A stretch of 64,000 nucleotides of DNA from NCBI GenBank assembly GCA_002269645.1, contig NIVC01000859.1:124001-188000 (forward strand), in the 5' to 3' direction. Under the pieces are notes generated by a model that was not told the DNA's origin, did no database searches, and saw only the letters and a list, made by a program, of their open reading frames with translations. Of the stretch, positions 6,392-44,923 are shown piece by piece. Source of the DNA: Macrostomum lignano. Taxonomy: Eukaryota. Each line of letters starts with the position of its first letter. Positions within the stretch are counted from its first letter, which is position 1. Both the position numbers and the translations under genes were made by a program.

Positions 6392-6593
6392 TATATCTAG
6401 ATATTCTAGGCTTTGTTTGTAGCCACTTGTATTGCATAGTACTATATAGCTATACTCCATTTATATTTGATGACAATCAATCATTTTGAAGGTGAATATG
6501 TCTAATTTTTATTTCTTTTAAAACACCATTTGTATTTTGCAAATTTTATAATAAAAACAAGTTCTAAGCTATAAATAAAAATGTATATAAATA

Positions 6594-7870
6594 GGGACTT
6601 CAGTGAGTTATAAGAAGTGCGTGCCAATGGCAAAAAAGTAAGAAAAAAGTCCAATTTTTCAAGGGCGATTTTAAAGAAACTATAGAAGCCAGGATGAAAG
6701 TAAAATATGCATTTAAAAGGTAAAAAGGAGCTCTTTCAAATGACACCAACTGCAAGTCTAGCTTTGTTATACTTTTTGCACTGTCTATTTTTAAAGTTGA
6801 CCATTTTTTAGGAGGAATATAAAATTGAAGCCAAAATGAATAAAAAAACAGTGGTTCAGAAAATGCTTTTTCTTAGCTGCAATGTGTTTCTTATAATGGA
6901 AACAAAGGTTTTATAGTGTAAAGGGATAATTTAGAAACATTTTTCTGGTGTTAAAAAAAATTTTTTTTCTTTTAATGCCCATATGGCTCTATGCAAAATT
7001 TCAAATCCAAAATTTTCCATGAAATCCTTTTCCTGCATTGTTTCTCTTTATATTTTTCATTACATATTGACAATACAAGCACAGTAAAAAAAACCGCTTG
7101 CCAATAGCTATAGGCGCAAAAAATTTGTGGAGGTTTCTTTTTTTGATACGTTTACATGTAAAATACCCATTGAAACGTGTATTTCGTGTTTTTTGTGAGA
7201 CTCTGCCTTCCGGCAAACTAGTTCTCTGTGTCATTTAACTAATTCTGCTATGCTGAACACGATAGACAAAACCGTTTTTTAATAAACCCATGCGCAAAGC
7301 CTGTACAGCACATTACATTGCAGTTGGGGTGTCTGTCATGCATTAAAAATTTAGGGCAAGAAGTAGAATAGTATTATAGTAGGTAAAAACCTGAACAAAA
7401 TGACACTAGCCTTGTATAAATTAAGCAAGCAGAACAGATGCTATTGTATTTTTAAAATTGCAATCATTGCGTATCTGGTTAAAATAGTCAAAATTTCATA
7501 CACCCATCCTGTTTCAATTAGCTTAGCAACTTGGGCATATAAAATAATATTAAAATATATAATTCATACAATTAACACTAAAAAACTGAACAAAATGACA
7601 CCAAGCACAGTCATTTTGGTTGGCTAGAAAATTAATTACAAGTGTTCAAAGACAAAAAGCCAACTTTTTGGCCAAAAATGATCACAAACCGTAATGTAAA
7701 AATTCCATTGGCTAAAGGCACAAATCGGGGTTACTAAAATAGCTGTAGTTTCCTTATTACTCAACCAAATCACTAAAGTTTGGCCATTTTGGAAATGGGA
7801 AAGTAAGATCTATCTAGTGAAATAGCAGCCTATAACAATTTCTGAAATTTAATTTTCTCACTGAAGTGCC
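6594..7870. mobile_element. 1277-bp non-autonomous DNA transposon
   Basis: 14-bp TIR GG(G/C)ACTTCAGTGAG (6594-6607 / 7857-7870), TA on both sides, AT-rich non-coding interior. Confidence 0.7.
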
Positions 7871-7933
7871 TAATATAAACTATATCTATCATCTAAACAT
7901 TAAAATAGTATTTTAGTTATCCAAATAACTTTT

Positions 7934-8721
7934 GGCTCATTCCATATAAGATAGACATATTTGGAAAATAGAAAAAAGTCAATATTTTTGCTTGCCATTG
8001 CCTAATTAGCCTATTTTTTTTTACCAAATGTTTATATTGTGCAATATATACAATCTAAGAATAAAGGAATGGTAAAATGTTGGATTAGTATGTTATCAAT
8101 TGGCAAAAAGTCATTTTTGTAAAAATTTGGACATTTTTCGAAGCAAAAGACATCATTACGATTTTGTACCTTTTAAAAACAAATAGAAAGCTTTTGAAGG
8201 TTGAAACAAACTATAGATAAAAGTATAGTACTCTCATCATCAGATAAAAGCATTGGTGACCAAATAATCTATTATATTTTTAATGTATTAGTACCTCAAA
8301 GTTACTGAATTGACAGAAAAAAATATGTTACGACCATAATGTTACAACCATAAGGCTGCCTTTTCTTTTGTATCTTTGTTGCCTTTTGAGTTTATATATT
8401 CTAATAAAAGAGTATGATTTCTAAAGATGTTCTTAGTCAAATTTTAAAAATGTATTGCAAAATATCAAAAATGAAAAATGTTATAAGACTTTTACCTTTT
8501 AGTTTCTATATGTCAAAAATCCTGTCGTTACGACCATAAGTGTCATTTAAGGTTTAATAGCATCTATACTAATGATGATATCTATATGAAACTCTATAAA
8601 TATATTCTAGACAAAATAATCTTTCATTTAAAATATTGGTTTAGTATATTCTATTATTAGATTTCATTTTATAAGTAAAAATAACCTGTCATGTTACGAC
8701 CATGCTTATATGGAATGAGCC
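7934..8721. mobile_element. 788-bp MITE
   Basis: Perfect 17-bp TIR GGCTCATTCCATATAAG (7934-7950 / 8705-8721), TTTT on both sides, internal GTTAC(G/A)ACCAT repeats. Confidence 0.82.
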
Positions 8722-9329
8722 TTTTGCTTATAACCAAAAAGACTGTACTCCATTATTTAAATGGTAACTAAAACAAATACTAATTTTATCTACTATATAA
8801 CACTTATAGGCCTAGCCTAGCTATGCGTATGGACCATGGTATAATTATATTTGACTATATATAAATCTAACTTTTTAAAGTGAATAAGTTGCATTTTTTA
8901 TTTGTTTTTTTGAAACATCATTCATACATTGCATTATTAATAGTATGAGCTAATAAAAATGCAATAAAGTGCCAACTTTGTAATCATTTTCTAAAGTAAA
9001 CACCTTAATAAGCAAAGTCCTGCCAAAAAACTGGAAGACCATATAGGCCTCTGGTCAAGAAATGATGTTTATATTGACAACTCAAACTTTTAAGACTCAA
9101 ACATTGCATGGTAAAATGGAATAACCAAGGACAACTAAAGCAACGCATCTACTTTAGTTGTTCTTGGAAATTAACATTGTATTATTAAAATTGTGGTCTC
9201 AGCTTTTTGAACATTGTTATTGTTGTAGATCTAAGATATTAGGACAGATATAATGGTTTAAGCACATTAGACCATGATCCTAAGACAATAAAAAATTATT
9301 TCCCTCCTGTTATACCAATATACCTCACC

Positions 9330-9526
9330 CAGTGGCGTAGCCAGGATTTCCTTCTAGGGGGGGGGGGGGGGGGGGTCACAGACACAGTCAGTCAGGCTCA
9401 CAGCGTCAGCAGCAACACAGCAACAGGGGCCCGGGGGCAGGGGGTGCTAGGCCTCTGGGGAGGGGGCCTGGATCAGCCGGCGGGAGGGGGGTCATGACCA
9501 TGACTCCCCCCTTGGCTACGCCCCTG
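9330..9526. mobile_element. Short hAT-type MITE with poly-G tract
   Basis: Ends CAGTGGCGTAGCCA ... TGGCTACGCCCCTG. CCTCACC occurs on both flanks as an imperfect TSD. Confidence 0.75.
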
Positions 9527-9984
9527 GTCCTCACCTGAACTCAACTGAACTGCAGTGTGTCAGTGTCACTATGTACGAATGTTACGAATACGAATACGAT
9601 TAAACAGGGTTTCTTAGAAAAAATTTTTTTGAATTTTAGAATTAAGATATAAGAATCGATATTTTATAATAATTTTCTAGTTTACCTTATATATGAAACA
9701 ATCATGTAAAAAATACTTTCAATTACCTAAAACAAAAATATACGAATTTTTAAAAAACATTCTTGTTTGTTTTGTTTAAATACGTTCAAACCCTCAGGTT
9801 TAGATTTATCGAGTTTTCTGTGTGCGGAAAGTACACTAATTAACAAGGCCATCCGCGCTGATCAAATCCGCGACTTTGATGGCACTGACTTGAAGGCTTT
9901 GACTGAGCGCCTCACAACCTTAGAGAAAACAACAAAGTAAGCCGCGATCAACAGGTGGTTTCCAAGGAGCTATATACAGTGTCC

Positions 9985-10256
9985 TTGCTCTGAGGCTGGC
10001 CTTCAGTGTGCGATGAACTCGCTCGATCATGCCGTTGGCATTAGGATTATATGCGGCCGTGCGGATGTGACGGACGCCGAGAAGATTCACCAGGTTAATT
10101 TGCCCATTAGTTCCGAGCGAAATTGAGCTCCTTGGTCTGCATGTGATGAGTGTTAACGGTGGGCCAAATCGACAAACCCAGTGGGCAACGAAGGCTTGTG
10201 CAACAACCGTACTGGTGATCGATTGCAATGGGATTGCTTCGACCCAGCGGGAGTAC
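9985..10256 (-). pseudogene. Ty3/Gypsy integrase core (rve) fragment
   Basis: YSRWVEAIPLQSITSTVVAQAFVAHWVCRFGPPLTLIT...LLGVRHIRTAAYNPNANGMIERVHRTLKASL is a typical integrase core. It is frameshifted near the second catalytic Asp, and no other pol domains are adjacent. Confidence 0.88.
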
Positions 10257-10371
10257 TCAAAAGAAAGTACGGTTGTATAATTTCTTATATACTTTTATTA
10301 ATCGCAAGGACAGTGGGAAACAAGGCGCAACAAACTAATCAATAATTTTGCTTCATGGGGACAAAACATAG

Positions 10372-10490
10372 CTAAAATGAGTGCCTGTGGCGCTAAAATG
10401 AGTGCCTGCAGCGCTAAAATGAGTGCCTGCGGCGCCAAAATGAGTGCCTGCGGCGCCAAAATGAGTGCCTGCGGCGCCAAAATGAGTGCC
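10372..10490. repeat. 21-bp minisatellite AAAATGAGTGCCTGCGGCGCC, about 6 units
   Basis: Visible tandem units. Confidence 0.9.
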
Positions 10491-10839
10491 GACAACACCG
10501 ATTCTGGAAAGAATGTACATATGTAGGGATTTAGTCGTGTACATGTAACATGTACAGAATTCTTGGCTTTGTCCCCCCACCATAAAATCCATGGCGACGC
10601 CTCTGCATACGAGTAAACCGTGTATCGCATTATGGTTTTTATGTAACTTCTCTAGTGATGAAATTGTTCTTAAATACACTCCTCACTATGTTATATGATA
10701 TGATTGAAAAGCTAAACTCAACAAGCTCGTATGTAAGCAAAGCAGGTAGTTTATAAAATAGACAGCAGCGTTGTTCATTGTTGAAAAATAAAATAAGTAA
10801 AAATGTAAGAAGCGATCAGTTGCATATGAGCCTGTTTTG

Positions 10840-11150
10840 TTATTTTATAGTTAATATGTCTTTAACTTCCCAGAAGTGAGGATCGTCCTCAGACATGCGC
10901 GAGAGTTCGTACGCTTGGCCACGCGGAGCCTGTACATTCCTTTTTCTGCTTTTCGCCAAAGGTTCACCATGGCTTTGCAAGTTTTCATAACGCTTGCGAA
11001 AAGCGTCGGCCGTCCGCTTGGCCAGTGGCTTCCTCGCTGGTTAATGAAGCGCTCTCGGTCTCCACTCGAATTCACGACGGGTTTAGTGCATAGCGCCACC
11101 AATCGAAACAAGAGATCATCGAGCTCGCTGGTCCACTTGGTGTAGTCCAT
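10840..11150 (-). pseudogene. Possible frameshifted Myb/SANT-like coding relic
   Basis: MDYTKWTSELDDLLFRLV in one frame and KRTADAFRKRYENLQ in another resemble helix 1 and helix 3 of a Myb/SANT domain. No family assignment is possible by eye. Confidence 0.3.
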
Positions 11151-11791
11151 TTTATACGATTACTTGTTTTGTTGCTGCAATATAATTATGGCATTTCACA
11201 GTCAGTTTAAAACCTTAAGAAGTCGGGAAGGTCGTTTTCGACCACTTACACCTTCGCAGCGCAGTCGGTTCAAAATATCTATGGCCAGCGCACAAATTCT
11301 GTACCCACTCGACCAAAAATAGAAGTAAAATAGCCTAAAGCCTGCTCCGGAAAATTTGCAGTTTTCCCATATAAGTTTTGACGCTGACTTGGCAGAATTG
11401 TAGGAGTTCACTTGCTACATACAGACAGACAGACAGACAAACATCGCGTCGGTTTTAGTATTAGGAGAAGCAAACAAACTTTGCAAAGATGGCCTCAGAC
11501 TGCCATAGACTGATTTCATCCGAAGCCAGTGCTATTACGAGGTACTCCAGCATGGGCAGCAGGAAGTTGCGAAACTGCTTGTGACGAATTTAATCTGGCA
11601 GTCCTTAGCAGAACAAGACCAAACAGAGAACAGAAAAATGCAAGTAGTAGAAAAGTCCAATTTTCAAATGAAGTGATATAGTTTGCTTGCTTAGTTGGCC
11701 AAGTTTTTATTTTATTTGAGTAGCGACGAAAACTACTCGACGTACGACGAGTAGCGACGAAACAGTTAATATACAAAAATAGAGAATACAT

Positions 11792-12133
11792 CTCCGTTGT
11801 AGGACAAAATTTCTCCATGTGCGGACAAAATTTCTCCGTGTGCGGACAAAATTTCTCCGTGTGCAGACAAAATTTCTCCGTGTGCAGACAAAATTTCTCC
11901 GTGTGCGGACAAAATTTCTCCGTGTGCAGACAAAATTTCTCCGTGTGCGGACAAAATTTCTCCGTGTGCAGACAAAATTTCTCCGTGTGCGGACAAAATT
12001 TCTCCGTGTGCAGACAAAATTTCTCCGTGTGAAGACAAAATTTCTCCGTTGTAGGACAAAATTTCACCGTGTGCGGACAAAATTTCTCAGTGTGCAGACA
12101 AAATTTCTCCGTGTGCGGACAAAATTTCTCCGT
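11792..12133. repeat. 21-bp minisatellite TGTGC(G/A)GACAAAATTTCTCCG, about 16 units
   Basis: Visible tandem units. Confidence 0.95.
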
Positions 12134-12345
12134 GGCATCCGGGGCAGCGGAGTCAGCAAATCTTCAGGAGCGATGGAAGTTCAGGTAAAGTCCGTCAAAC
12201 AGGTCTCAGAAACCCCTGAAAGACTTACCGGAGAGCTCAGCGCCGCAGGTGGCAAAGCTGGTGAGCAGCGGACACTCGGGCAAGTCGCGGAGCATCGGAG
12301 CAGCGCTGTGATGTCTTCCTTATTACCAAGACTTTCTCGGTAATC
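12134..12345 (-). pseudogene. Degenerate LRR-like fragment (F-box/LRR family paralogous piece)
   Basis: DYRESLGNKEDITALLRC, then after a frameshift LRDLPECPLLTSFATCGAELSG with stops. Resembles the 15945-16680 pieces (FYRDSDEQLRKILRC, LADLAECPRLSLL, STGAELGG). Confidence 0.4.
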
Positions 12346-12375
12346 AAGGAACAATCACTTCTAGCTACTTTGCTA

Positions 12376-13197
12376 GGCAACCCAGGTATCAAATGAAGGT
12401 ACTGCTTACCTTGACTCCGGTTTGAGAGATCTCCTTGTAGTACTAGGACTTCTTAATTGACTCGTTAGACATCTATTTCATAAACCAGGTCCACGTTCCT
12501 TTACTTCCGCTGAAGTCGTTTCCGGCCGGTATCTGTCGTTTGGACCAATCAGAAGCTTCGTGTTATCGATGGGAATCCCTGCACCTTAATGCGGTTTCAA
12601 GTAAGCCTTCTCCTTCTAGTGGTGTCTTAATGCAAGCTGATAGTCCTCTAAGATCTATCAGGATAGTCCTTCGGGAGACTACAACCAATGGAGTCTCAAT
12701 AGACTCAAACACCTGGCGCAAATGAATAAGGCTTACCGCAAGAACTCGACCGAGTCTCGATTTACTTGGTCGGAAGGAAGACCTTTGGAGGCTTCCTCTC
12801 GGAGCTTTTCTTCCTTCTGGAAGGCAAAAATTTGAGCTCCGGTCCGCTCCGGATCACTTGTATTTATAGGCAATCGGACCCCACATGAGGTCATTGAGTC
12901 CATTGTCTTAAATGTCAAAGGTTCACGGATTGGCTGCTGTCAAACATGACAGGTTAGAAAGTTACTCCATTGGTTTAGTGTGAGCATGCATGATTGGTTA
13001 CCATAGCTGAGTTATTTTTAGATATCTTTGATTGGTTCATCTGAGTGCAGACTGAATGATGTATCGCAACTGGGGTTTGAGCTGACAATCGCGGGTAACA
13101 CGTGATTGCGTGATTTCTAAAATTAGCATGCTCGAGATTTCTCTCTTCCTATTGGTTGATTCAAGTATATGTATGGTTCATCGCATATCTTTATACA
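12376..13197 (-). mobile_element. Probable solo LTR (822 bp)
   Basis: 5-bp direct repeat TGCTA on both sides (12371-12375, 13198-13202). Minus strand starts TGTAT, has five CCAAT boxes, then TATAAATA (12868-12861) and GTAAGC donors (12736 and about 12407). The 3' end reads GTTGCC rather than canonical CA. Confidence 0.55.
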
Positions 13198-13214
13198 TGC
13201 TACTTAGTATACTA

Positions 13215-14130
13215 CTAGCAATCTAGTGCGGCCCCGTTCGGGGCGCCCAATAAGCAAGGAGCAAAAATAGTTAATGGAAAACAATCGCAAAAATGCAAAA
13301 ATAATGTGCAAAAAGCACATTTTCTTAAGAACCAATTCCTTCTTAATTTTTAAAAATCACCTGATTCGTGCAAAATTGTCACGGACAAAGGTGTTTGCTA
13401 GGAATCATCACCTTTTCTCTAAAATAAACAAGCAGACAACAAAATATAGCTCCCTCTAAATAGAAAATATTCCCAAGACAGCAAGCATCCCCCCAGATAG
13501 CAAGCACCCCCTCCCAAAAGTAAGCAACCGCAGATAGCAAGCATCCCCTAATGCTCATAGCAAGCATCACCTCAGATAGCAAGCATCTGCAGATAGCAAG
13601 CATCCCCCAGATAGCAAGCATCACCCCAGATAGCAAGCATCACCCCAGATAGCAAGCATCCCCCAGATAGCAAGCATCACCCCAGATAGCAAGCATCACC
13701 CCAGATAGCAAGCATCACCCCAGATAGCAAGCATCCCCCAGATAGCAAGCATCCTGCAGATAGCAAGCATCCCCCAGATAGCAAGCATCACCCCAGATAG
13801 CAAGCATCACCCCAGATAGCAAGCATCACCCCAGATAGCAAGCATCCCCCAGATAGCAAGCATCCTGCAGATAGCAAGCATCCCCCAGATAGCAAGCATC
13901 CCCCAGATAGCAAGCATCCTGCAGATAGCAAGCATCCCCCAGATAGCAAGCATCCCCCAGATAGCAAGCATCCCCCAGATAGCAAGCATCCTGCAGATAG
14001 CAAGCATCCCCCAGATAGAAGTATCCACCCAGATAGAAGCATCCTGCAGATAGCAAGCATCCCTGGATAGAAAGAATCCCATACATGTAACCAGTACCCA
14101 ATATACTACTGAATAAAATGTGTGAGTAGT
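13215..14130 (-). mobile_element. Non-autonomous Helitron: 3' end clear, 5' end not located
   Basis: Minus strand reads GGGCGCCCCGAACGGGGCCGCACTAGATTGCTAG|T, i.e. a GC hairpin (13231-13244) followed by terminal CTAG at 13218-13215 and then T. The upstream limit is a guess. Confidence 0.6.
13478..14075. repeat. 18-19 bp minisatellite AGATAGCAAGCATC(CCCC/ACCCC/CTGC)
   Basis: About 32 tandem units. Confidence 0.95.
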
Positions 14131-18465: not shown

Positions 18466-19188
18466 TTTAGCACCAGAGGCTTTAGCACCAGGGGCTTTAG
18501 CACCAGGGGCTTTAGCACCAGGGGCTTAGCACCAGGGGCTTTAGCACCAGGGGCGCCAGCACCAGGGGCGCCAGCACCAGGGGCGCCAGCACCAGGGGCG
18601 CCAGCACCAGGGGCGCCAGCACCAGGGGCGCCAGCACCAGGGGCGCCAGCACCAGGGGCGCCAGCACCAGGGGCGCCAGCACCAGGGGCGCCAGCACCAG
18701 GGGCGCCAGCACCAGGGGCGCCAGCACCAGGGGCGCCAGCACCAGGGGCGCCAGCACCAGGGGCGCCAGCACCAGGGGCGCCAGCACCAGGGGCGCCAGC
18801 ACCAGGGGCGCCAGCACCAGGGGCGCCAGCACCAGGGGCGCCAGCACCAGGGGCGCCAGCACCAGGGGCGCCAGCACCAGGGGCGCCAGCACCAGGGGCG
18901 CCAGCACCAGGGGCGCCAGCACCAGGGGCGCCAGCACCAGGGGCGCCAGCACCAGGGGCGCCAGCACCAGGGGCGCCAGCACCAGGGGCGCCAGCACCAG
19001 GGGCGCCAGCACCAGGGGCGCCAGCACCAGGGGCGCCAGCACCAGGGGCGCCAGCACCAGGGGCGCCAGCACCAGGGGCGCCAGCACCAGGGGCGCCAGC
19101 ACCAGGGGCGCCAGCACCAGGGGCGCCAGAACCAGGGGCGCCAGAACCAGGGGCGCCAGCACCAGGGGCGCCAGCACCAGGGGCGTCA
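18466..19188. repeat. 15-bp GC-rich minisatellite AGCACCAGGGGCGCC, about 48 units
   Basis: Near-perfect array. Variant units (GGGCTTT) are confined to the left edge. Confidence 0.97.
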
Positions 19189-19861
19189 GCTACGAAATGT
19201 AGAACTCCGCTAATATAGCACTCAGATTACCATATTTGGAATTGGCTTTACCACTGAAGAAGTTCATCAATAGATTTACCATGAACAGCGCGCCCCCTGT
19301 CAAAAGCTGTGGCATATTACACTGTTATATAACTCGCATCGAAAATCTTGCCAAGAAAAGTTTTGTTCCGCCAAGTAAATCTTTTTGAGAGGCGTTGTGA
19401 AGGCGTGGCTTCCAAGCGCTTGCAATACTAATGATAATAACCACTTTCTTGGCCTTAAGCTAGATCAAAAGTCATCGAACCGTGGCAGTTGCTTTTGTCT
19501 GAACCAACTGAGCAACAAGATTCTGGGAGAGAATTGCTTTAATGACAATAAGCAGGCGAAAGGTTGAAAATACGGTTGGACTCTTGGCAGTGACAAACAG
19601 GCAGACAAAACTCACTGGGGTCCAGTTGTCAACTGTCAAATAATGACTAAGGAAATGTCCCTAGGGCAAAGCTGAGATTTTCTTTTTGTAGAGAATGTTA
19701 AAACTTCATTTGCATGGCTACAGAATTAAGTGGCATTTTACCTTTCTTATAGGTCAGACAATTTAACCGATTTTTATAATTGCAGCTAACTTGATGCTGT
19801 TATTTCTTCTTTTTGGCTTTGTAGTTTAATTTTAAACCCATAAGCGATGCCCAGTGTCTGT

Positions 19862-21180
19862 TTGGCAACCCTAAGAGTCCATTCGGCAACCCTAAGAGTC
19901 CATTCGACAACCCTAAGAGTCCATTCGGCAACCCTAAGAGTCCACTCCGCAACCCTAAGAGCCCATTCGACAACCCCAAGAGTCCACTCCGCAACCCTAA
20001 GAGCCCATTCGACAACCCTAAGAGTCCATTCGACAACCCTAAGAGTCCATTCGACAACCCTAAGAGTCCATTCGACAACCCTAAAAGCCCATTCGACAAC
20101 CCTAAGAGTCCATTCGACAACCCTAAGAGTCCATTCGGCAACCCTAAGAGTCCATTCGACAACCCTAAAAGCCCATTCGACAACCCTAAGAGCCCATTCG
20201 ACAACCCTAAGAGTCCATTCGACAACCCTAAGAGTCCATTCGACAACCCTAAGAGTCCATTCGACAACCCTAAGAGACCATTCGACAACCCTAAGAGTCC
20301 ATTCGGTAACCCTAAGAGTCCACTCCGCAACCCTAAGAGTCCATTCGACAACCCTAGGAGTCCATTCGGCAACCCTAAGAGTCCATTCGACAACCCTAAG
20401 AGTCCATTCGACAACCCTAAGAGCCCATTCGACAGCCCTAAGAGTCCATTCGGCAACCCTAAGAGTCCATTCGACAACCCTAAAAGCCCATTCGACAACC
20501 CTAAGAGCCCATTCGACAACCCTAAGAGTCCATTCGACAACCCTAAGAGTCCATTCGACAACCCTAAGAGTCCATTCGACAACCCTAAGAGTCCATTCGG
20601 CAACCCTAAGAGTCCACTCCGCAACCCTAAGAGCCCATTCGACAACCCCAAGAGTCCACTCCGCAACCCTAAGAGCCCATTCGACAACCCTAAGAGTCCA
20701 TTCGACAACCCTAAGAGTCCATTCGACAACCCTAAGAGTCCATTCGACAACCCTAAAAGCCCATTCGACAACCCTAAGAGTCCATTCGACAACCCTAAGA
20801 GTCCATTCGGCAACCCTAAGAGTCCATTCGACAACCCTAAAAGCCCATTCGACAACCCTAAGAGCCCATTCGACAACCCTAAGAGTCCATTCGACAACCC
20901 TAAGAGTCCATTCGACAACCCTAAGAGTCCATTCGACAACCCTAAGAGACCATTCGACAACCCTAAGAGTCCATTCGGTAACCCTAAGAGTCCACTCCGC
21001 AACCCTAAGAGTCCATTCGACAACCCTAGGAGTCCATTCGGCAACCCTAAGAGTCCATTCGACAACCCTAAGAGTCCATTCGACAACCCTAAGAGCCCAT
21101 TCGACAGCCCTAAGAGTCCATTCGGCAACCCTAAGAGTCCATTCGACAACCCTAAAAGCCCATTCGACAACCCTAAGAGT
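19862..21180. repeat. 21-bp minisatellite AACCCTAAGAGTCCATTCGAC with a 672-bp higher-order repeat
   Basis: About 63 units. Rare variants recur exactly 672 bp apart (19969/20641; 20271/20943). Confidence 0.95.
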
Positions 21181-22475
21181 CATTTAAATGCCTTTTCAGC
21201 GCCTCCGGAATGCAGTTTGTGCCCCGCTCTCATTTATTTACCTGTTAACTGACTTCCTGTGACTTTTTTTCACACATCCCCTTTATCCTCCCATTCCACA
21301 GGTTCATACATCATAATAACACCGCTCGCTTCCCAAGTCAAGAGCAATAAGTCAGAGAATTATTGTAAACCAGCTATAGCTTAAGATAACTATGTATCAA
21401 GCAATTCCCCAGGGACAAATTGCCCATGCCTATAAAGCCTTCCACCCATCATTCGCACAAGAAACTTTCTACTTCCATCCAGAGCCAGAGAAACTTCCCT
21501 AGCAACAGCTTCTAAGCTGTGATAGGTAGCGGGCTCTGGGTCCTGTCACTCGTCAGGCGGAAGCGAGGAGAGGAGAGAGAGAGAGGTGTTCGCTTCCTGT
21601 CAGGATGAAGCCAAGGAAAGGTGAAAGAGTGGAACAGAATCTTTCTTGAAAGGGCTGCTGCTTGCACCTTCTCTCTCTTGAAATGATGCAACCAAGCGTT
21701 CTGTGCAGCTCGGGTAGCGGTCAGCAACCGTCTCGTTCGTTACCTAAGGAAGTATATATTTTTAAACAAAGGGCCCATCAGCAGCAACAGGTGCTCCTCT
21801 TGGTACAGATCAATGAATGGTGCTTTGACCACAGAACCAAGTGGCATTGCAGTTACTGTAGAAGTTCGAATTACATTATGGGTCAGGAAACTGGGTCTTC
21901 TCCATCTCGGCAAACTTGCAGTTGTCATATTATATATACAATATACAACCCCTGTGCCTGACCTACCCCTCTCGCAGCCAAAGGTTTTCGAGTTGCTAAG
22001 CATGGCCAAAGTAAAGCTCCAACGGAAGGAAAGGAGATCGCGCGGTCCAAATGACAACTGTTTAAGACGCTAGCTTTCCCATGACTCTGCTGTATGACAT
22101 GATTTATTGCATATAGTATATAGAGTAATTATAATATACGACTCTCATGCTAACAGCTAAAAAGTAAGGTGATAACTTCGTGTAGTGTGTTTTTTTTGTT
22201 GTTGCTAGGCCAAACAAATCATTGATCACTTGACAGTCAAAGGATTTCCTTCATATAGCTTTTTCGCTTTGAAGAGTTTTATGGAGATATGACCAACTAG
22301 CGAACTAGCGAATAAATAAATGATTCAATTGACTTCCGCTTGAAACCTGGTCTCTGAGACGCTGACCAAGAGTGGTGTTGATCTTGACACCTTTTTTAGA
22401 AACTGTCTCTATATTGTGTGTATGTGTGTGTCCTTTTGTGTTCTTGCAGCTGGCGCCTCTCATTATTCTAGATTT

Positions 22476-25399: not shown

Positions 25400-26428
25400 G
25401 CAGTTCATCTGTGACACTTCACAGCAGTGGGGGGGGTGTTTTGACAGCTGGACAGGTCATCAAAACCGCAGAGCTGCCAAGTCCTGCTACAGGCGATGTG
25501 GGTGAGAAGTGAGAGGCAGGCACAACAGGACAGGCCAGACTCCGCCCACAATAGCGGTGCTTTCGCTTATTTTAACACTCATTGCTCCTCCAACACATTC
25601 TCGCATTTTCACCTCGCGGCATTAAGACAAGGTGACGCGCATTATTTTGCACAATATTTTGATCGCAAAGAAGAGAAAAAAGAGCTGATTTTTGTATATA
25701 ATAATGACAGGGACTGCGCGGGGGTTTTGTCGCTTCCGAAAGTTTTTGGCAGCCTGCATGCGGTGCCTTCACTGCCTGAGGCGTTAGGCGGCACCCCCCC
25801 CCCTCAAGCCGCCTTTGTTGGTGGCTGCCCCGCCCTTCGAAGAAAAAATCAAACCGTTGTCTCGCTATAGGAAAAGATTTCGATCAACAACTCCGCTCTC
25901 TGCGTTGGTTGTATAGTTTGGGGAAAAAACTCCCCCCCCCTATACGAACCTCCGATGCTCCCCCAGGGCGATGCAATAAACGGTCATTGCTGGGGGTACG
26001 GAGCCACTACAGCCTTTTTGGAATGTCGTTTTGGTTGTTTTCGAATTTAAAAGAAAAAAATATTTCTTTGCCAAAATCGAGTAACAAGTGTGTTCAAAAA
26101 TCAAAATCTGACCATTCTGCAGGGAAAATTAAGCTGCTACTTTGAAACTCCTTGGCAGTGTGAACAACTTGTTCAGTTTTTTTATTTTTTTCTAAAAAAA
26201 TTTGGACCGCCCACAAAGACGATTCAACTATTTCAACCTGCGATTTCTATAAACTACCGTTATGCTGGACACGCAGGTCTAGAGAGAGAACAGTTCTAAA
26301 ATTTTATTGTTATGATCCTGTTGCTAATGCTGCTAATATAGAGTCCAGGTGTGACAGAACAAAACTTCTGGAACCAAAATCTTACAACGCATCTCGTTTA
26401 GAACTTTATGAGCCTCATTGCCCTCTGC

Positions 26429-29400
26429 CATAGAAATCTAGAATACTAACTGGAAGTGAAGGCTTTCGCGGGGGCGTACATACCCGGGCCGGGATAAAAA
26501 GCTCCTCTTCCCCAAAAGTTTTATTTCCCCAAAATTTTAATGTTTATTTATCATTCTTTTCATTGAAACAATTTTATTTAAGGTATATTGCTTACCAAGA
26601 GTACACAAGTTATATTTCTCAAGCAGTGCAGTGAATGCAAAACTTACCATCAGTGGGCGCCAAACTTTGCAACTTTTCTTACAGTCGGTCCAGTCGCTGA
26701 TGCGGACAGGCGTTTAGTCCAGTTCTTTGCAGCAGTGTTAAACATCTTCCTGCACACCAGCTGCAAGATTGGATGCTGATACTCACAATGCGTTTGGAAT
26801 CGCAACTGTGGGAGTTGTTCAAAAATCTTGGAACAAACTGCTTCAAACAGACTGATGTGTCTGTACCTCGATTTCAGAAATCGCTGACAGCGCTGCAGTT
26901 GCATGATTATCACCCAAGCCTCTTTGCAGATGGTGAACACCAGGTCAGAAGGGTTCGTTAGACCACCGCGGTCTAGCTGTCGCAGAAAGTCAGATGGCGC
27001 TTCGGCTGCAGATTCGTCTGGAGTGGCAACTAGTAGCTGGTTGCATGCAGTGCAGCTTCTTTGCGCTGTGATGGACTTGGCGATTTTTCCAGCCACATAG
27101 TAGGTTACGTTGGCATCAGCTGCTTCGATCTCCTCAATTAGGTTTAGTTGGTCTGCAATTTGCCCGGCTTCTTCCATTAAGTCGCTGCCCTCGCTGTGCA
27201 GGTCCTTTGCAGCTGCAAGTGACTGAATTGTCTGTGGTGCAGCATGACTGAACTTCAGAACTGAAACAGAACGGATTGCCTTCTCACCATCCAGAACATC
27301 TTTGCACGAAACATAGTAGTTTAATCCTTTTCGGTGACGGTACCATCCAAATCTTCCTTCCAGTGGGTCCGACTGGAAAGCTCCGACCAGAACATATTCG
27401 AACATAAGACAATTGAGTAAGTACCTGCAGACTTCAACTAGAGCATCCAGCGTGTGACTGAGGGCCAGAAAGGTTTCGTCGCTAAGACCTTTGTTTCTGC
27501 AGGCCTTCCATTCGCGCAGATAATTAGCGACGTCCGCGAGGTAGGTAAGCTTCCAATCTGTGTCTGACCTGACTGGATCTCGGCAACAGTCTCTTTTATG
27601 TTTGCCAATTGAGCTCGTCTTGACATTTAAAACTTTCCAAAGTTGCGTCACCGCATGGACAAAAGTCGCAGTGTCGCCCCACGGCTTTCCTTGATTCGCC
27701 GAGTAATATTCCAAGGCGTGCGCGGTAGACTCAGAAAACACAGCTAGTGCCAACTTTGGTGAGGTCTTCTGAATACTTTTTGGATCGATGACGCTTGAGT
27801 TGAGTTTTGGGGCCAGTTTGAGTGGCTTGTCCTGTTCCAGATTGTACAGCTCTTTGATGTTCTCAAATTTTGCTACAATTAAGGAATCAGCCGTTCTCTT
27901 CACATGTGGTAGCGGGACATTAAAAAAGGCGCTATCTTTTGCTGGGAGCTCCAGAGACTGCCTTTTCTGAAAATTGTTATATACGTTTTTAATTGTGTGC
28001 GTTGGGTCAAACAGAAGGAAAATCTTCTTTTCTCGATGGAACGGATGGGGTACGCATGTTTGCAGAATGCCACCGCAAAGCTTGTGGACAAAAAACGCAC
28101 GGTTTGCGGAATGGTTGTCAACCAAGATGGTCACTACATTAAGGTTTGTGCGCTGCAGCATCCCCATGACGCTCGTGTAGTGCTCGTGCAATATTTCGGC
28201 AGTCAACTTGCTGAGGGGGAAAAGTGCGACGACATCGCGGTACTTTCCGGCGATTGACTTGACCATGAAGCACAGCATTGTTGAAGCCGGGTTGGCCTCC
28301 TGCATGCCAACAATAGACCCGGAAGAGTAGTCTATTCTTCGATTTAGGTGTATCTCATCAATAATCAGGTTGACATTACTCTCCATTATTGACAGATTTT
28401 GAGTCCGTAGATGAAGGTAATTTTCGTCCGAGACGCCAGGGCTGACAGACAGAGGACTAGAAATCGCCGTTAGTCGTCTAACTGATGGCAGAACAAGCAG
28501 GTCTTGATCCAGCAGCACCTGGTAGCAAGCTGAACTGGTGGACTTCAGCACCATGGCAAACACTATCAAACCAGGGGAGTACCGTCTAGCCTCCTTTGCC
28601 TGGCAACGAAGCCTAAGCTGCTCCACTATAAACTGGATTTGCTGCATCAGTGGCGTGGCAGAGTCATTCGATTCCTCCAGCAAGTTGCACAGGCAGTCGA
28701 TGGCAGCTTCAATCCATTTAGCTTCTGCGCTTCTCGGATTGGGATCAGGGATGCCCCACGATTTTGCTAAAGCTAATAAGTTTTGAATCTGCGAAAACAA
28801 GGTGATCTTTCCGAGATCCAAAAATTGTTCAAATCGCTTCATTGGAACCGGTTGTCCTTTCAAACTTACAGAAGCAATCATATCGCGTTGAATTTTTACA
28901 GAGCAGACCAGATTCGGGACATCCTCCACATCAATCAGGCAGAACGCAATGGAGTCGGCGCCAAACACAGGAACGAATCCAACAGGAATCGGATTGCTCT
29001 CTAGCATGGTCTTGATTTCCTCCAACGATCCCACTTTATCCAACGACAGAAACTCCGATGCCGCTGTTTCTAGCCTGTCACTTTCGGCTTGGTGTCGTAG
29101 CTCAGCTGTGGCTGATTCGGTCCGGGAAGTAGAAGCCATTGGCTGCAGTCTTTCCGGAAGTTGAGGAAAAACAGAGGGGATGGCTCCCTTTCGTAAAACG
29201 CGCAGGCTCAGTTGCGCATTTCTCTTGCGCTTTCGACGAGTGTTGGAGTCTTGCGATGTGCTGATGAAGTCCGACTCCAAAAAGTGCGCAGAGCACAACC
29301 GAGACTCCTTAGTTGGGGCATAGTGCTCTCTGCGAATTCTTCGGAGCCACTCAGTCATCAGTTGTGGATCATTTAACGGAAAGGCATGGAAAGATGTTTT

Positions 29401-29947
29401 CACATTCGATTCATTGTTCGAAGTCCTTCTTGCGTAGCCAGATTGGCAATTAAATGCAGCGCATTTGTATCCCATCTAGGCAAATTTGTGATATTCAGTT
29501 TTGGCAGGATTTGGGTGCTAACAGCCGGTTGCCTCTTTGTTATATATATATTTTCCTGTGCAGAATACCGTTTGATGTACATTTCCCTCCTCTCGTTTCC
29601 CATATTCTTTCCTTCCTCCCAAGAATATCCCCACTCCTATTCAATTGATCGTGCACCACTGTAAAGAGCTCTCTGTTTTGCTCCAGTCCAGGGTTTGCTA
29701 TCACTGTACGCTCGTACAGCATTTACAGTGTACATCTGGGTGCTGTCTGAGCTTGAAGGGAATGAAAGATGAAGGCATGAGCAACAAGAAAGAGTTTTAA
29801 AGGGCTGGGGGGTTTTGGGAGGGTCTTTTGGATGCGGGTTTAGTCACTATAACATTTTCAAGCTAAAAAGAATCGGCCCGGGTAGGTACGACTTGAACTC
29901 CCCGACAAAGAAGCCTTCACTTCCAGTTAGTATTCTAGATTTCTATG
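26429..29947 (-). mobile_element. Intact P-superfamily DNA transposon, 3519 bp
   Basis: Perfect 37-bp TIR CATAGAAATCTAGAATACTAACTGGAAGTGAAGGCTT (26429-26465 / 29911-29947). 7-bp TSD CCTCTGC (26422-26428, 29948-29954). Subterminal 17-bp inverted repeat (26475-26491 / 29874-29890). Single transposase ORF. Confidence 0.96.
26650..29475 (-). CDS. THAP-domain P-element-type transposase, 941 aa, intronless
   Basis: THAP C2CH finger (CAAFNC...FHAFP...W...LCSAHF). Candidate catalytic D (IIDEIHL), D (VDNHSAN) and E (QSDPLEGRFG). DPTHTIKN motif of the insertion domain. C-terminal YVAGKIAK..C..C..RGGLTNPS. AATAAA on the minus strand at 26578-26573. Confidence 0.95.
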   Translation of the reverse strand: MGYKCAAFNCQSGYARRTSNNESNVKTSFHAFPLNDPQLMTEWLRRIRREHYAPTKESRLCSAHFLESDFISTSQDSNTRRKRKRNAQLSLRVLRKGAIPSVFPQLPERLQPMASTSRTESATAELRHQAESDRLETAASEFLSLDKVGSLEEIKTMLESNPIPVGFVPVFGADSIAFCLIDVEDVPNLVCSVKIQRDMIASVSLKGQPVPMKRFEQFLDLGKITLFSQIQNLLALAKSWGIPDPNPRSAEAKWIEAAIDCLCNLLEESNDSATPLMQQIQFIVEQLRLRCQAKEARRYSPGLIVFAMVLKSTSSACYQVLLDQDLLVLPSVRRLTAISSPLSVSPGVSDENYLHLRTQNLSIMESNVNLIIDEIHLNRRIDYSSGSIVGMQEANPASTMLCFMVKSIAGKYRDVVALFPLSKLTAEILHEHYTSVMGMLQRTNLNVVTILVDNHSANRAFFVHKLCGGILQTCVPHPFHREKKIFLLFDPTHTIKNVYNNFQKRQSLELPAKDSAFFNVPLPHVKRTADSLIVAKFENIKELYNLEQDKPLKLAPKLNSSVIDPKSIQKTSPKLALAVFSESTAHALEYYSANQGKPWGDTATFVHAVTQLWKVLNVKTSSIGKHKRDCCRDPVRSDTDWKLTYLADVANYLREWKACRNKGLSDETFLALSHTLDALVEVCRYLLNCLMFEYVLVGAFQSDPLEGRFGWYRHRKGLNYYVSCKDVLDGEKAIRSVSVLKFSHAAPQTIQSLAAAKDLHSEGSDLMEEAGQIADQLNLIEEIEAADANVTYYVAGKIAKSITAQRSCTACNQLLVATPDESAAEAPSDFLRQLDRGGLTNPSDLVFTICKEAWVIIMQLQRCQRFLKSRYRHISLFEAVCSKIFEQLPQLRFQTHCEYQHPILQLVCRKMFNTAAKNWTKRLSASATGPTVRKVAKFGAH

Positions 29948-30754
29948 CCTCTGCAGAGCGGGACCGTTACTTGTTAAAGACAATTTTCACTTAACTGGCT
30001 GCTTTGGGGGGGTTGGGGGGTATTTGAAATTTGAGGATTTGGATTTTTATTATTTTGTTTGGTTTTAGTGGTAATTGCGAAAGCAGGTTTCGTAGGCCCG
30101 ACCTCGGCAAGGAAACTCCCCCCCCCCTTGACCCGTTATGCTTTGTCTTCAAGTGGAAACACGGAGTTGAAATCAAGTGGGCCATTGACCATTGTGCAAC
30201 CAATTTGACTTTCCTGAATCCTCGCTTCTACTTAGGAGGAACAACAACCCGAAAAAGAAAGTCTTACAACAAACAAAAGATAAGAATTAGCGACAGGTGA
30301 TTTTTGGCTACTTAAGTTTACCTGAGGAGGGGGGGGGCATCTCTGTTGCTTTGACATGTCGGTGTCTGTGTATGCGTGACCTTTTCAACGGCAAGAAGTC
30401 TATAAAAGATCATCGGATAGCTATAGATACCTGATCAAGATTATCAAAGTCTTAAAATTGGACCCCCTGCTGTTCTTATCTCCGGCCAATGACAATTGTC
30501 GCTGTTGGAGATGGCTTTTTGACATTCTCTGCCGGTGTAGGCCCGAGTTTTGAGTCCCCAATAACCCAAGTTCCGGTTCTGAGTCTGTCAAATGCCACAC
30601 AGACCGCGCAAGGTTTTTCTTAAACTAAAAATGACTAATTATGAGATAATCGATTGACTTTTGGTCATTTTTATGAGCTTGGGATATGATAGGCATCTGA
30701 AATTTTGCTTTTATGGACTACAGGTTTTGGATAGGGAGATGAAAGAGAGAGATG

Positions 30755-35253: not shown

Positions 35254-36497
35254 ATTCTGTCACTCCCGTTCTGTCACTCCCGTTCTGTCACTCCCGTTCT
35301 GTCACTCCCGTTCTGTCACTCCCGTTCTGTCACTCCCGTTCTGTCACTCCCGTTCTGTAACTCCCGTTCTGTCACTCCCGTTCTGTCACTCCCGTTCTGT
35401 CACTCCCGTTCTGTCACTCCCGTTCTGTCACTCCCGTTCTGTCACTCCCGTTCTGTCACTCCCGTTCTGTCACTCCCGTTCTGTCACTCCCGTTCTGTCA
35501 CTCCCGTTCTGTCACTCCCGTTCTGTCACTCCCGTTCTGTCACTCCCGTTCTGTCACTCCCGTTCTGTCACTCCCGTTCTGTCACTCCCGTTCTGTCACT
35601 CCCGTTCTGTCACTCCCGTTCTGTCACTCCCGTTCTGTCACTCCCGTTCTGTCACTCCCGTTCTGTCACTCCCGTTCTGTCACTCCCGTTCTGTCACTCC
35701 CGTTCTGTCACTCCCGTTCTGTCACTCCCGTTCTGTCACTCCCGTTCTGTCACTCCCGTTCTGTCACTCCCGTTCTGTCACTCCCGTTCTGTCACTCCCG
35801 TTCTGTCACTCCCGTTCTGTCACTCCCGTTCTGTCACTCCCGTTCTGTCACTCCCGTTCTGTCACTCCCGTTCTGTCACTCCCGTTCTGTCACTCCCGTT
35901 CTGTCACTCCCGTTCTGTCACTCCCGTTCTGTCACTCCCGTTCTGTCACTCCCGTTCTGTCACTCCCGTTCTGTCACTCCCGTTCTGTCACTCCCGTTCT
36001 GTCACTCCCGTTCTGTCACTCCCGTTCTGTCACTCCCGTTCTGTCACTCCCGTTCTGTCACTCCCGTTCTGTCACTCCCGTTCTGTCACTCCCGTTCTGT
36101 CACTCCTGTTCTGTCACTCCCGTTCTGTCACTCCCGTTCTGTCACTCCCGTTCTGTCACTCCCGTTCTGTCACTCCCGTTCTGTCACTCCCGTTCTGTCA
36201 CTCCCGTTCTGTCACTCCCGTTCTGTCACTCCCGTTCTGTCACTCCCGTTCTGTCACTCCCGTTCTGTCACTCCCGTTCTGTCACTCCCGTTCTGTCACT
36301 CCCATTCTGTCACTTCCGTTCTGTCACTCCCGTTCTGTCACTCCCATTCTGTCACTCCCGTTCTGTCACTCCCATTCTGTCACTCCCGTTCTGTCACTCC
36401 CGTTCTGTCACTCCCGTTCTGTCACTCCCGTTCTGTCACTCCCGTTCTGTCACTCCCGTTCTGTCACTCCCGTTCTGTCACTCCCGTTCTGTCACTC
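35254..36497. repeat. 14-bp minisatellite CACTCCCGTTCTGT, about 89 near-identical units, in GATA intron
   Basis: Direct observation. Starts about 22 bp after the donor. Confidence 0.97.
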
Positions 36498-41380: not shown

Positions 41381-42281
41381 AAGCCTAATATGCTAAGAAC
41401 TCTTTGATCTTTTAAATTATGGATCTATAGATCTAGTCATATATCTCTATAAGAAATTTTCATTTCCTTGACAGTTGGCAGTTGGGCTGACAGTCTGGTT
41501 TCCTGCATCAAGGAAGCAATTGTCGCTAGTTTTTTGCAACAAGAACAAGACCAACACAAAAGCAACACAAGTTGCTTATTTCATTCAGTGCACTGCGAGT
41601 CTGTAGAGACCCGGATCAAAAAAAGGTTTCCAAGACAGAGAGGCGCCAGCGGGTCTGGTCTGAAAAAGGCAAAAGCTTTAGTAATAAGTAATATAATAAC
41701 CATAGAAGCTAGCATTTCCACCTAGCACTATACCCGAGGAGAGAGAGAGTATTGGGAAGAATTTCAACACGAGGGTGTCTGGCTGACAAGAGAGGCATGC
41801 GGCGGGGGGGGGGTCTCGTGGCGCCGAACCGAGACCATCAAAAATTGCAACGCAAACAATCGAGGCACAGAGCCAAAATTTCAAGTCCTCTCTCTCTCTG
41901 TTTGACAACCTCCGCTTCTCCCCCCTGAGATTCCTTTATAACTTCCCAAGAGAACGAGGTGCAACTCGCTTTCCAAATGATCGCAAAAGGACACCAAGAG
42001 TTGGGACAAAGACCTGACCATAACGGGGTGGTGTTCATAACTCGGGTATATATATATACACAACCAGTACCGCATTCACAACCATATAAGCGAAAAAACT
42101 ATCAGCCTGAAGTGGAGAGAAAGCAACAGTCTGCCTACAAGTTGTTTGCCAGATCAAACGGTGCTTAACAGAGATTAGTTTGTAGTTTTGTACAGCATGC
42201 TTACAGCAGCAAATTTTACCGCATTCGGTCCCATCCCGATGCTCGTGGCACCGACTCCGTCATCGCTGTTTTATTCCGCAG

Positions 42282-43360
42282 ATCATCAGCAGTACAACCG
42301 ATCGTCCGCTCAGAGATTTGCCTGGATGTCAGCTCAGCAGCACCAACAGCAGCAGCAACCGCAGCAGCAGCAACATCACCAGTGGTTTAGCCAGCACGGT
42401 CTTGGGCATCAGCACTATCAACAGCAGCAGCAGCAGCAGCAGCTTCCATTCGCCACAGCTGGCACTCCGGAGACTCCACCAGCAACTATTCCGGTGTCAG
42501 TCGGCTTCATCAACACCAGCAACAGCGGCAACAACTGCAACAGTAGCAGCTACCTGCAACATGCCGCCTATCAATCATTCTTGAACGGTGTCTCCGGCTC
42601 CGCCTCCTCCACTGGCATCTCTGTCAAAGGTGAGCCGCCAGAAGGCCTGTCGCTGCCGCTGTCGCGGTCGCAGAACTCGGCGGCCCTGCACGAGGAGGCG
42701 TCCGCGGTTGACCTGTTGAACAACCAGAGCGGCAGCAACGATCACGAGACCACGGCGGCTACCGACGATCGGCGAAGGCGGAGCAGCACCGAGGACCCCG
42801 GAGATGTCACTAGCGGAGTGCCGGAGGAGCAGGACGAGCGGGAAGACCCGGACGACGTCAGCTGCTACCATGACGGAGCCTCAGCGGCTGTGGCGGCGGC
42901 CTCAGCGCAGCAGTCGTTGGCTTGGGCAGCAGCTGCAGCCGCAGCAGCGGCCTCACAGCAGCATCAGCAGCATCAACAACAGCAACAGCAGCAGCAACAG
43001 CAGATGCTGCAGACTCCGCTGCCTCATCACCAGATCAATGGTCAGCATCTTCTGCTTCCGGAGCAGCAGCAGGAGCTTCAGCTGCAGCAGCAGCAGCATC
43101 AGGAGCACCATCAAACTCCTAACAACCAAATTCTGCCTCCCCTACCGCCGCCAGCGCCTCGGCAGACTTCCACGGGTAAAAAGTCTGGCGGCGGAGGCGG
43201 CAGCGCCGCTACAGAAGGTCGCGAGTGCGTCAACTGCGGTGCCACCAGCACGCCGTTGTGGCGCCGAGATGGCGCCGGTCACTACCTGTGCAACGCGTGC
43301 GGCCTCTACCAGAAGATGAACGGCAGCGCCAGACCGCTGGTGAAGCCCAAGAGGAGGCTG
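42282..43360 (+). CDS. GATA123: GATA factor exon: polyQ/polyA region plus N-terminal zinc finger
   Basis: Acceptor GTTTTATTCCGCAG| (42281, phase 1). [49 protein letters not shown]. Phase-0 donor CTG|GTGAGT at 43361. Confidence 0.93.
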
Positions 43361-44923
43361 GTGAGTGGCGAGTTTGGCTAACTGCTGGGATCTGTGAATG
43401 GGTTGCTCAGTGGCGCACTTTAAGCGACATTGTCACACAACCGGTGAGAGGCATTGCTGCCCATTCCGCCGACTCCCCTGAGCAAGTATACAAGCGCGCG
43501 GATACGGCCCCAACTTTATTTATCGTTAGGCATGTACACTTCACTGGGCCCTGGGGGTTGGCCCTCAAGGCCGTTAATTGCGAGAGCGGAGCCAAGCCGA
43601 GATTCCAATTCAGCCCCAAATTAATGCGACTGCATTTGGAATCGAGCCTGGGCCGCTAAGCACCATAGCTATCAAAAATTTCAATTTTTAATGCAAAAGC
43701 AATTTTCTAAACCAACTTCAATATTTATTCAGACCAGTACTGCACCGTGACTGCAACAAGAATCCCAAAATCCATCACGTCAACAGATTGATAAATCTAT
43801 GCAAATTTCAAAGCTTACAAAAGCCAACGAAAATCCCTAAAAAATTAAAAAAATACTTCACTCATTATTAAGCTTCCTTAAATATTCCTCAGTGATGTTT
43901 CTTCAGCCAGAGCTTCAGACCTAACAATTGACCCATCAACCTTATAGCGCCGGTGTGTTTGCAGAATGTAAGCTGAAGTTTATCTGTATCGGCGCATCGG
44001 GTCTGCTTTCCTCCTTTCCTGTGTACCTCTCGTTCAGAGAGAGGTCCATGAACCCACGGGAGGCTTGGGGCTTGAGGTAAATTTTATCAGCTCAACCATC
44101 TCCAAACCTCGACCTAGGCAAGGGGGGCGCGGCCTCCGGTTTTCTCCACTTTTCGTGGCAGGTCTCGGCGGGAGGTCCTCAAGGGGGGGGTATTTCATGC
44201 CGACAGGCACAGACCAACAGAATGTCCATCAATTCTCTATTTATTCTTTCATTCGATGATTCCTTGAATCGTGAACCCCATACCCTATCCCAGTCTCGTG
44301 TACCACCAGAATGATTGTTAAATTTAATAATAAATTGACAACAATTATTCAAATCAGTTTCGAACTCTGTTCCCCTCTTTGCCTCTCTCCTCTCTCCTCT
44401 CTCTTCTCTCCCTTCTCTCTCCCTCTCTGGGTCCTCTCCCCGTGTCTCCCCATCCGCTCTCTCCCTTCTCTCCCTCTCCTCTATCTCCTCCTCTCTTCCC
44501 TCTCTCTAGCCTCTCTCTCCCCGCTCCCCTCACTCTTTCTCTTTTCTCTGGTCTTCCACAAAAAGCACGGCGGATCTGCACCACCGATTAGGATAATTAC
44601 ATATTAGGGAAAGGTAACTAGGTAGATTTGACAAGCGCCTAATCGTCTTGTTACCAACGACCAAGTTTCGACGCGGTCTGCAGAGCTTCCTTTTCAACTC
44701 TATAGGCAAGACACAATGGAAGCGCTGGATTATGAAAAAACCACCAAGTGTACGGGCTGTCAAAGATGAGGGTTAAAAAGTCGATTAAGCTGTCAAAAGG
44801 TGGCGGGAAGTGACTGTAAGACCGGACTTAATTAAGGGGTTTCTCACGTCGCTTTCGTCCGACTGGCTAAGCAAAGTTTTCAGCAAAATTAACGCACTGG
44901 AATACATTTCTTCTTTTTTGCAG

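Follow-up and report, generated by a model that had tools for sequence, protein, structure and literature searches.

The P element of Drosophila carries 31-bp terminal inverted repeats (TIRs) and a multi-exon gene for a 751-aa transposase (DmTNP), which is under germline control through its regulated third intron (IVS3), and its target-site duplications (TSDs) follow an 8-bp rule (PMC7776569, PMC3698922). The 1360 (Hoppel) and Galileo elements have 7-bp TSDs and intronless transposase genes, and an intronless ancestor has been proposed for the superfamily as a whole (PMC3698922); the TIRs of Galileo are very long and internally repetitive. Zebrafish Pdre2 (zfTHAP9) encodes an active enzyme and has TIRs of 13 bp that start with CAT, 8-bp TSDs, as well as subterminal inverted repeats (STIRs), 12 bp long, located ~400 bp inside its ends (PMC10983969), and human THAP9 is single-copy and has neither TIRs nor a TSD (PMC8230255). 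In this study, we analyzed a 64-kb stretch of Macrostomum lignano contig NIVC01000859.1 (hereafter, the window), in which a P-type element of 3,519 bp occupied positions 26429-29947. We consider it very probable that this P-superfamily element is a cut-and-paste DNA transposon, full-length and of the autonomous type, belonging to M. lignano or a very close relative. It is a new addition to a known group and not a new kind of element.

A preliminary description of this DNA, made from the letters alone, had presented the element as a complete member of the P superfamily, and the protein domains, the alignment of the catalytic residues, the predicted fold, the TIRs, and the TSD all agreed with that view. 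The TIRs were 37 nt each and 100% complementary, and both began with CATAG; the CAT start, which had already been pointed out, is shared with the TIR of the Drosophila P element. When up to 3 mismatches were allowed, the 37-mer was found at two places only in the window, with 0 expected from 100 shuffles. An exact TSD had also been claimed, with no length named, and we found it to be the 7-bp CCTCTGC on both flanks, as an 8-bp reading breaks the identity. The empty (pre-insertion) site would read ...CATTGCCCTCTGCAGAGCGGG..., and the TSD plus unique flanks run continuously into the element. The surroundings were satellite-rich intergenic DNA. No further copies of the TIR or STIR were found in the window besides the element's own ends, and a search for the TIR in 84 other loci gave no match, yielding neither a second copy nor a derivative of the miniature inverted-repeat (MITE) type there.

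The transposase was encoded on the minus strand by a single open reading frame (ORF) of 2,826 nt with an ATG start. As first described, this frame was uninterrupted and intronless and encoded 941 aa, and because it spans all of the domains, the statement that the element lacks the germline-intron control of the fly P element is true descriptively. The absence of that control was expected rather than remarkable, as 1360 and Galileo are intronless and the ancestor is presumed to have been so. Sampled members of the same family lacked introns, too. Instead of the one downstream AATAAA that had been noticed, three were found on the coding strand, all inside the element (Table 1). Together with a TATA-like box before the ATG, these signals lie within the element, so that it could form a self-contained transcription unit. 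A consensus splice-donor-like GGTAAGT directly follows the TGA stop (26642-26648, minus strand; TGATGGTAAGT), which could be the mark of an intron in the 3' untranslated region or could be due to chance.

The domain content of the protein was that of a P transposase. Pfam matches to THAP, TNP-like_RNaseH_N, and TNP-like_GBD all exceeded the curated cut-offs (Table 1). The THAP finger proposed in the preliminary description scored 55.3 bits against a cut-off of 23.9 (PF05485), with the zinc ligands C5, C10, C61, and H64 present and an AIPSVF box at residues 98-103, and the structures of THAP1 and THAP2 in the PDB matched this domain. A family profile built from the window protein and 25 relatives (26 sequences) matched the Drosophila P transposase (PDB 6P5A) with E=1e-39 (residues 106-547). 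In the profile alignment, which was repeated with hmmalign, D373, D453, and E706 corresponded to the catalytic D230, D303, and E531 of DmTNP and were invariant in 26/26 sequences. The three acidic motifs that had been singled out from the translation, IIDEI, VDNHS, and DPLEG (positions 371, 452, and 703 of the protein, respectively), contain exactly these residues. The DPxH motif was likewise borne out as D490-P-T-H493, which with K496 aligned with D339/H342/K345 of DmTNP and was invariant in the 26 sequences.

The predicted fold pointed in the same direction. An AlphaFold model of the window protein, built on the family alignment, had a mean predicted local distance difference test score (pLDDT) of 83.5. 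The best PDB matches found with Foldseek were 6p5a and 6pe2, the strand-transfer complexes of P transposase (E=5e-19; template modeling score (TM) 0.79-0.81, target-normalized), with a TM of 0.81 to 6p5a_A at ~19% identity over the structural alignment, while Hermes and Transib ranked far below P transposase. The order of parts was also that of DmTNP, with a THAP domain, a coiled coil, a helix-turn-helix (HTH) region, and an RNase H-like domain split by a GTP-binding-type insertion. Residues ~136-241 (~28753-29070, minus strand) included ~100 residues without a counterpart in the DmTNP alignment. They comprise a confidently predicted five-stranded beta module (residues 167-210), which follows the coiled coil and precedes the HTH.

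The closest protein found was M. lignano A0A1I8H379, with 3 substitutions in ~770 aligned residues, or ~99.6% identity within blocks. The 86% identity reported for it was due to three spurious internal gaps in its gene model. Beyond residue 870, that model no longer follows the element and runs on into another THAP domain, being fused to a foreign THAP exon. As this second THAP exon is encoded nowhere in the window, A0A1I8H379 should represent another locus with a near-identical copy, which lends modest support to the presence of two or more copies of the family in M. lignano. The independent annotation of a protein ~99.6% identical to ours, along with the continuity of the TSD and the unique flanks with the element, also argues against an assembly artefact or a contaminant; nothing specific spoke for such an origin, and we regard it as hardly credible even in a window as repeat-rich as this one.

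A second, more distant lineage was also present in M. lignano. Its protein (BOX15_Mlig022091g1; P0024) was 35% identical to the window protein and was located at positions 9737-13307 of locus L084 (GCA_002269645.1, NIVC01000016.1), in an element with the TIR CAGGGAATCCTA (also given as CAGGGAATCCTAAAGAC) and the exact 7-bp TSD GTCCAGC. The only DNA match between this locus and the window was an (ATAG)n microsatellite, and the species assignment of the window therefore relies on protein A0A1I8H379. The P0024 element falls within a gene model for a 7tm_2 receptor and is presumably intronic. Both A0A1I8H379 and P0024 had been deposited merely as generic THAP-domain or hypothetical proteins, and in the literature searched, to which Repbase did not belong, no account was found of P-like elements in any flatworm, Macrostomum included.

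Beyond Macrostomum, the family was large. An exhaustive profile search returned 3,959 cluster representatives at E<=1e-30, and the relatives collected for comparison (~50 word-sharing proteins and 80 metagenome loci) were ~850-980 aa long and 31-47% identical to the window protein over the best aligned segment. Most were single ORFs, and many of the relatives occurred on contigs about as long as one element (3.3-5 kb). Few were named; besides BOX15_Mlig022091g1, there was the "THAP domain-containing protein 1" of Nymphon striatum. Both ends could be located in nine elements (the window element and those at L001, L005, L008, L010, L012, L022, L041, and L084), and no convincing TIRs were found at L002 and L003, where the contigs were truncated or the ends degenerate. 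The TIRs were 27-37 bp long in eight of the nine, with 17 bp in the more divergent L084, and began with CA(T/A/G)(A/G)G in all but L001 (CGTGG/CGAGG), the start being CAWGG in most. The motif CTGGA was found at TIR positions ~21-27 in the seven elements closest to that of the window. The termini were C/G in all nine, and a 7-bp TSD was exact in five (window, L001, L022, L041, and L084), whereas an 8-bp TSD was never exact. Within the P superfamily, our element is part of a large metazoan clade whose members are mostly unnamed and have this end architecture in common.

Further features of these ends were recorded. Read in the orientation of the transposase, the five exact TSDs were G/C-rich (GCAGAGG, GTTTGCC, ACTGGTG, GGTGGGG, and GTCCAGC, in the order given above), which hints at a target preference that five elements are too small a sample to judge. 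In a more distant subgroup (L044, L050, L056, L058, and L060, on JAAUY... contigs), an inverted repeat, CTAGAAGCCTTCAC, hugs the ORF ~270 bp upstream and ~37 bp downstream. The 10-mer AAGCCTTCAC of this repeat recurs, in opposite orientation, at the inner end of the window element's TIR. L041, which is related to that subgroup, has a similar inner repeat, GGAACCTTCACA, well inside its true TIRs.

The relatives came from disparate sources, including a sea spider (Nymphon striatum) and many environmental or host-associated metagenome contigs, and P elements are classic horizontal invaders. A very recent horizontal transfer from another animal would fit such a distribution. However, the nearest relative outside Macrostomum was only ~41% identical, so that no donor is in sight, and the presence of the second, 35%-identical lineage in M. 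lignano fits long residence. We therefore regard a very recent transfer as improbable.

The STIRs provided a second level of end architecture. They formed a 17-bp pair, complementary at 16/17 positions, with the sequence CGTAC(C/A)TACCCGGGCCG (also written CGTACMTACCCGGGCCG), and these two sites were the only ones in the window, where 0.01 would be expected. The spacers between TIR and STIR were unequal, with 20 bp at the 5' end as against 9 bp at the other. A loose TAC...GGCC core was common to the STIRs of the relatives, at the same position as in the window element, and in seven of the nine elements the STIR ended ~74 nt from the 5' terminus and ~63 nt from the 3' terminus, a constant offset of 10-11 bp (in L001, for example, the spacers were 19 and 8 bp). 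That an asymmetry of one helical turn has been kept across proteins only 35-40% identical suggests that the STIRs are THAP sites and that pairing by the enzyme takes place between a 5' end and a 3' end. A comparable arrangement is known from the Drosophila P element, in which 10-bp THAP-binding sites lie 9 and 21 bp from the 31-bp TIRs at its two ends, and this asymmetry has been likened to the 12/23 rule known from V(D)J recombination (PMC7776569). In the same review, the 21-bp spacer is assigned to the 3' end (PMC7776569). In the window element, the long spacer is at the 5' end. The primary P-element papers reportedly give the opposite assignment to that of the review, so that the long spacers of the two elements may or may not lie at corresponding ends.

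These ends also bear on whether the locus could be a domesticated, THAP9-like host gene and no transposon at all. The ORF was intact and conserved, and vertebrates have domesticated genes of the THAP9 type (PMC8230255). However, domesticated THAP9 has no TIRs or TSDs (PMC8230255) and occupies a single orthologous locus, whereas here perfect TIRs, an exact TSD, and STIRs flank the ORF, relatives share the same end architecture, and a near-identical protein occurs in a different genomic context. Domestication is thus very unlikely. Of the features of a P-superfamily transposon, the THAP domain, the aligned DDE residues, TIRs with STIRs, and a TSD of 7-8 bp were found, and the insertion domain was present with part of its GTP contacts kept. 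The 8-bp TSD and the multi-exon gene with a regulated third intron, which mark the strict Drosophila type, were absent, and the TIR and protein were longer than those of the fly element. The 7-bp TSD and the intronless gene are traits shared with Galileo and 1360 and do not denote membership in either; the compact TIRs with one STIR each differ from the long, internally repetitive TIRs of Galileo. Zebrafish Pdre2 and human THAP9, likened here by description, resemble the window element in encoding a THAP-DDE transposase of ~900 aa without the fly intron control. As in Pdre2, the TIRs start with CAT and are accompanied by subterminal repeats, which in Pdre2 lie much farther from the ends.

The preliminary description had called the insertion recent, and this was upheld by the paired positions of the element, by its unbroken 2.8-kb ORF, and by the ~99.6% identical protein at an apparent other locus. 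All 44/44 paired positions (37 in the TIRs and 7 in the TSD) were identical. This would bound divergence since insertion at ~3/(2x44), or ~3%, at 95% confidence, and the intact ORF points lower; judged from these letters, the copy is young on any reasonable rate. With no differences in the TIRs or TSD and no lesion in the ORF, the copy is plausibly still mobile.

The question of whether the enzyme works was approached through its GTP contacts, for which eight residues have been listed in DmTNP (PMC7776569). In the alignment with DmTNP that was to confirm the catalytic and GTP-contact residues, the former were confirmed in full and the latter in part, with five of the eight contacts kept or conservatively changed and three changed (Table 1). 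GTP use by the window transposase is plausible on this alignment.

Several observations weigh against the reading as an autonomous-type, working transposon or limit it. Three of the eight contact positions differ in the window protein (S572, P573, and K614). K614 stands in place of D444, a residue that the fly enzyme cannot do without, as the D444C change abolishes both excision and integration by DmTNP (PMC8230255), and K was rare there, occurring in 3/26 sequences. The Pfam library used gave no meaningful match on the C-terminal 242 aa or on residues 101-279; precomputed matches to THAP9_C exist for relatives and for A0A1I8H379 (P0001). The 472-nt leader holds six upstream ATGs. The exact 941-aa protein had no record in the gene-position index or in the exact-sequence look-up, and the role of the STIR as a putative THAP-binding site is drawn from position and conservation only.

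A copy intact in structure but immobile, through missense inactivation (e.g., K614 or P573) or full silencing by PIWI-interacting RNAs (piRNAs), would make the element a very recent fossil, and we hold this reading to be a serious possibility, somewhat short of an even chance. The K614 substitution described above is consistent with it, as is P573, which was unique among the 26 sequences at the V401 position. No second copy was found as DNA in the exact-protein look-up or in the TIR search of 84 loci, and M. lignano is reported to have active PIWI/piRNA silencing of transposons (PMC4604429). On the other hand, the other two sequences with K at the D444 position were distant relatives and most of the clade had N, so that the clade appears not to need Asp there. 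All other conserved positions were kept, and the perfect TIRs and TSD indicate very recent transposition by the same or a nearly identical protein.

Table 1. Features of the P-type element and correspondence of the GTP contacts of DmTNP (positions are those of the window)
Feature	Position	Strand	Remarks
TSD, copy on the 3' side of the element	26422..26428		CCTCTGC; identical to 29948-29954
TIR, 37 bp, 3' end relative to the transposase gene	26429..26465	+	CTGGA motif at TIR positions 22-26
Spacer between TIR and STIR, 3' end	26466..26474		9 bp
STIR, 3' end	26475..26491	+	CGTACATACCCGGGCCG; 16/17 complementary to 29874-29890
Three AATAAA signals	26520..26578	-	26573-26578, 26543-26548, 26520-26525; 72-125 nt past the stop
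Transposase ORF	26650..29475	-	941 aa plus stop, intronless
DPLE motif	27358..27369	-	D703 (= D528, GTP contact), catalytic E706 (= E531)
GTP-binding-type insertion domain, residues 534-621	27613..27876	-	PF21788 (TNP-like_GBD), E=3.6e-09
RNase H-like domain, N-terminal part, residues 346-462	28090..28440	-	PF21787 (TNP-like_RNaseH_N), E=1.3e-12
Catalytic D453	28117-28119	-	Aligns with DmTNP D303
Catalytic D373	28357-28359	-	Aligns with DmTNP D230
THAP C2CH zinc finger, residues 5-103	29167..29463	-	PF05485, E=1.2e-14
TATA-like box	29546..29553	-	71-75 bp before the ATG, in the element; sequence match, putative promoter
STIR, 5' end	29874..29890	-	Coding-strand sequence CGTACCTACCCGGGCCG
Spacer between TIR and STIR, 5' end	29891..29910		20 bp; 11 bp more than at the 3' end
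TIR, 37 bp, 5' end of the element	29911..29947	-	Fully complementary to 26429-26465
TSD, copy on the 5' side of the element	29948..29954		CCTCTGC
GTP contact D528			D703, identical
GTP contact K385			K557, identical
GTP contact S409			S581, identical
GTP contact N447			N617, identical
GTP contact F443			W613, conservative change
GTP contact K400			S572, differs
GTP contact V401			P573, differs
GTP contact D444			K614, differs

The rest of the window was dominated by repeats. Retention of CpG in the element had been set against mariners said to lie in the same window, and no mariners were found, either by Pfam on 20 ORFs, including those in AT-rich, low-CpG stretches, or by a fuzzy six-frame search for mariner/Tc1 motifs. 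The observed/expected CpG ratio was indeed higher in the element (0.78) than in the rest of the window (0.60), and the contrast with mariners was not reproduced; this difference carries no weight, because most of the remaining sequence is taken up by ~25 minisatellite arrays. Unit lengths in these arrays were 12-59 bp, and copy numbers reached 89, at 99% identity (e.g., 35255-36497, 19866-21181, 18469-19190, and 60674-62206), and they yielded long spurious ORFs on both strands. A window-wide search for direct repeats returned tandem arrays only. The same 28-31/59-bp satellite (unit ~GGATCTGGGAGGCTG..CCCAGCAACTGA) occurred at both ends of the window (89-693 and 57959-59892), in opposite orientation, with ~85% identity and a distance of 57 kb between the two. 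An ORF with a GATA zinc finger at 42188-43381 on the plus strand (PF00320, E=7e-16) probably represents one exon of a GATA transcription factor of the host, and no other clear host coding sequence was seen. A short ORF at 9920-10228 on the minus strand had a weak integrase-core match under the cut-off (rve_3, E=5e-05) and may be a retroelement remnant. The stretches 2400-10300 and 49700-53700 were AT-rich (GC 0.31-0.37) with no recognizable coding content, and the observed/expected CpG ratio at 4001-8000 was 0.31.

By homology with the Drosophila P transposase, a series of steps may be proposed for transposition of the window element. The N-terminal THAP zinc finger would bind the STIRs through their TAC..GGCC core, and the 20-bp and 9-bp spacers at the 5' and 3' ends, an asymmetry of one helical turn, would favor pairing between a 5' end and a 3' end. 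The HTH region would contact the inner TIR, which is the site of the conserved CTGGA. The RNase H-like domain (D373, D453, and E706), interrupted by the GTP-binding-type insertion, would then cleave and join the DNA, while the insertion domain may hold a nucleotide against the terminal base; all nine elements end in C/G. Integration with a 7-bp stagger would produce the CCTCTGC duplication.

We tentatively propose, as one reading that falls short of being the probable one, that the element is now mobile in M. lignano, that it represents a large, uncharacterized metazoan clade of P elements, and that the design of its ends shows 12/23-like pairing to be ancient. If true, the element would serve as a transposon vector and mutagen, homologous and free of introns, in the only flatworm with stable transgenesis. 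In 2021, M. lignano was the sole flatworm for which stable transgenesis was available, and its transposon option was the heterologous piggyBac, at low frequency (PMC8717057). An intact endogenous element with defined 37-bp ends and a transposase encoded by a single ORF is a candidate for an excision or integration assay. Neither this use as a tool nor the point about end pairing alters the classification, as intronless P-superfamily elements with 7-bp TSDs are already known. For the biology of the organism, the element may be one origin of spontaneous mutations in lines kept in the laboratory. For the family, the spacer asymmetry in seven of nine complete relatives suggests that asymmetric end pairing is conserved well beyond the Drosophila P element.

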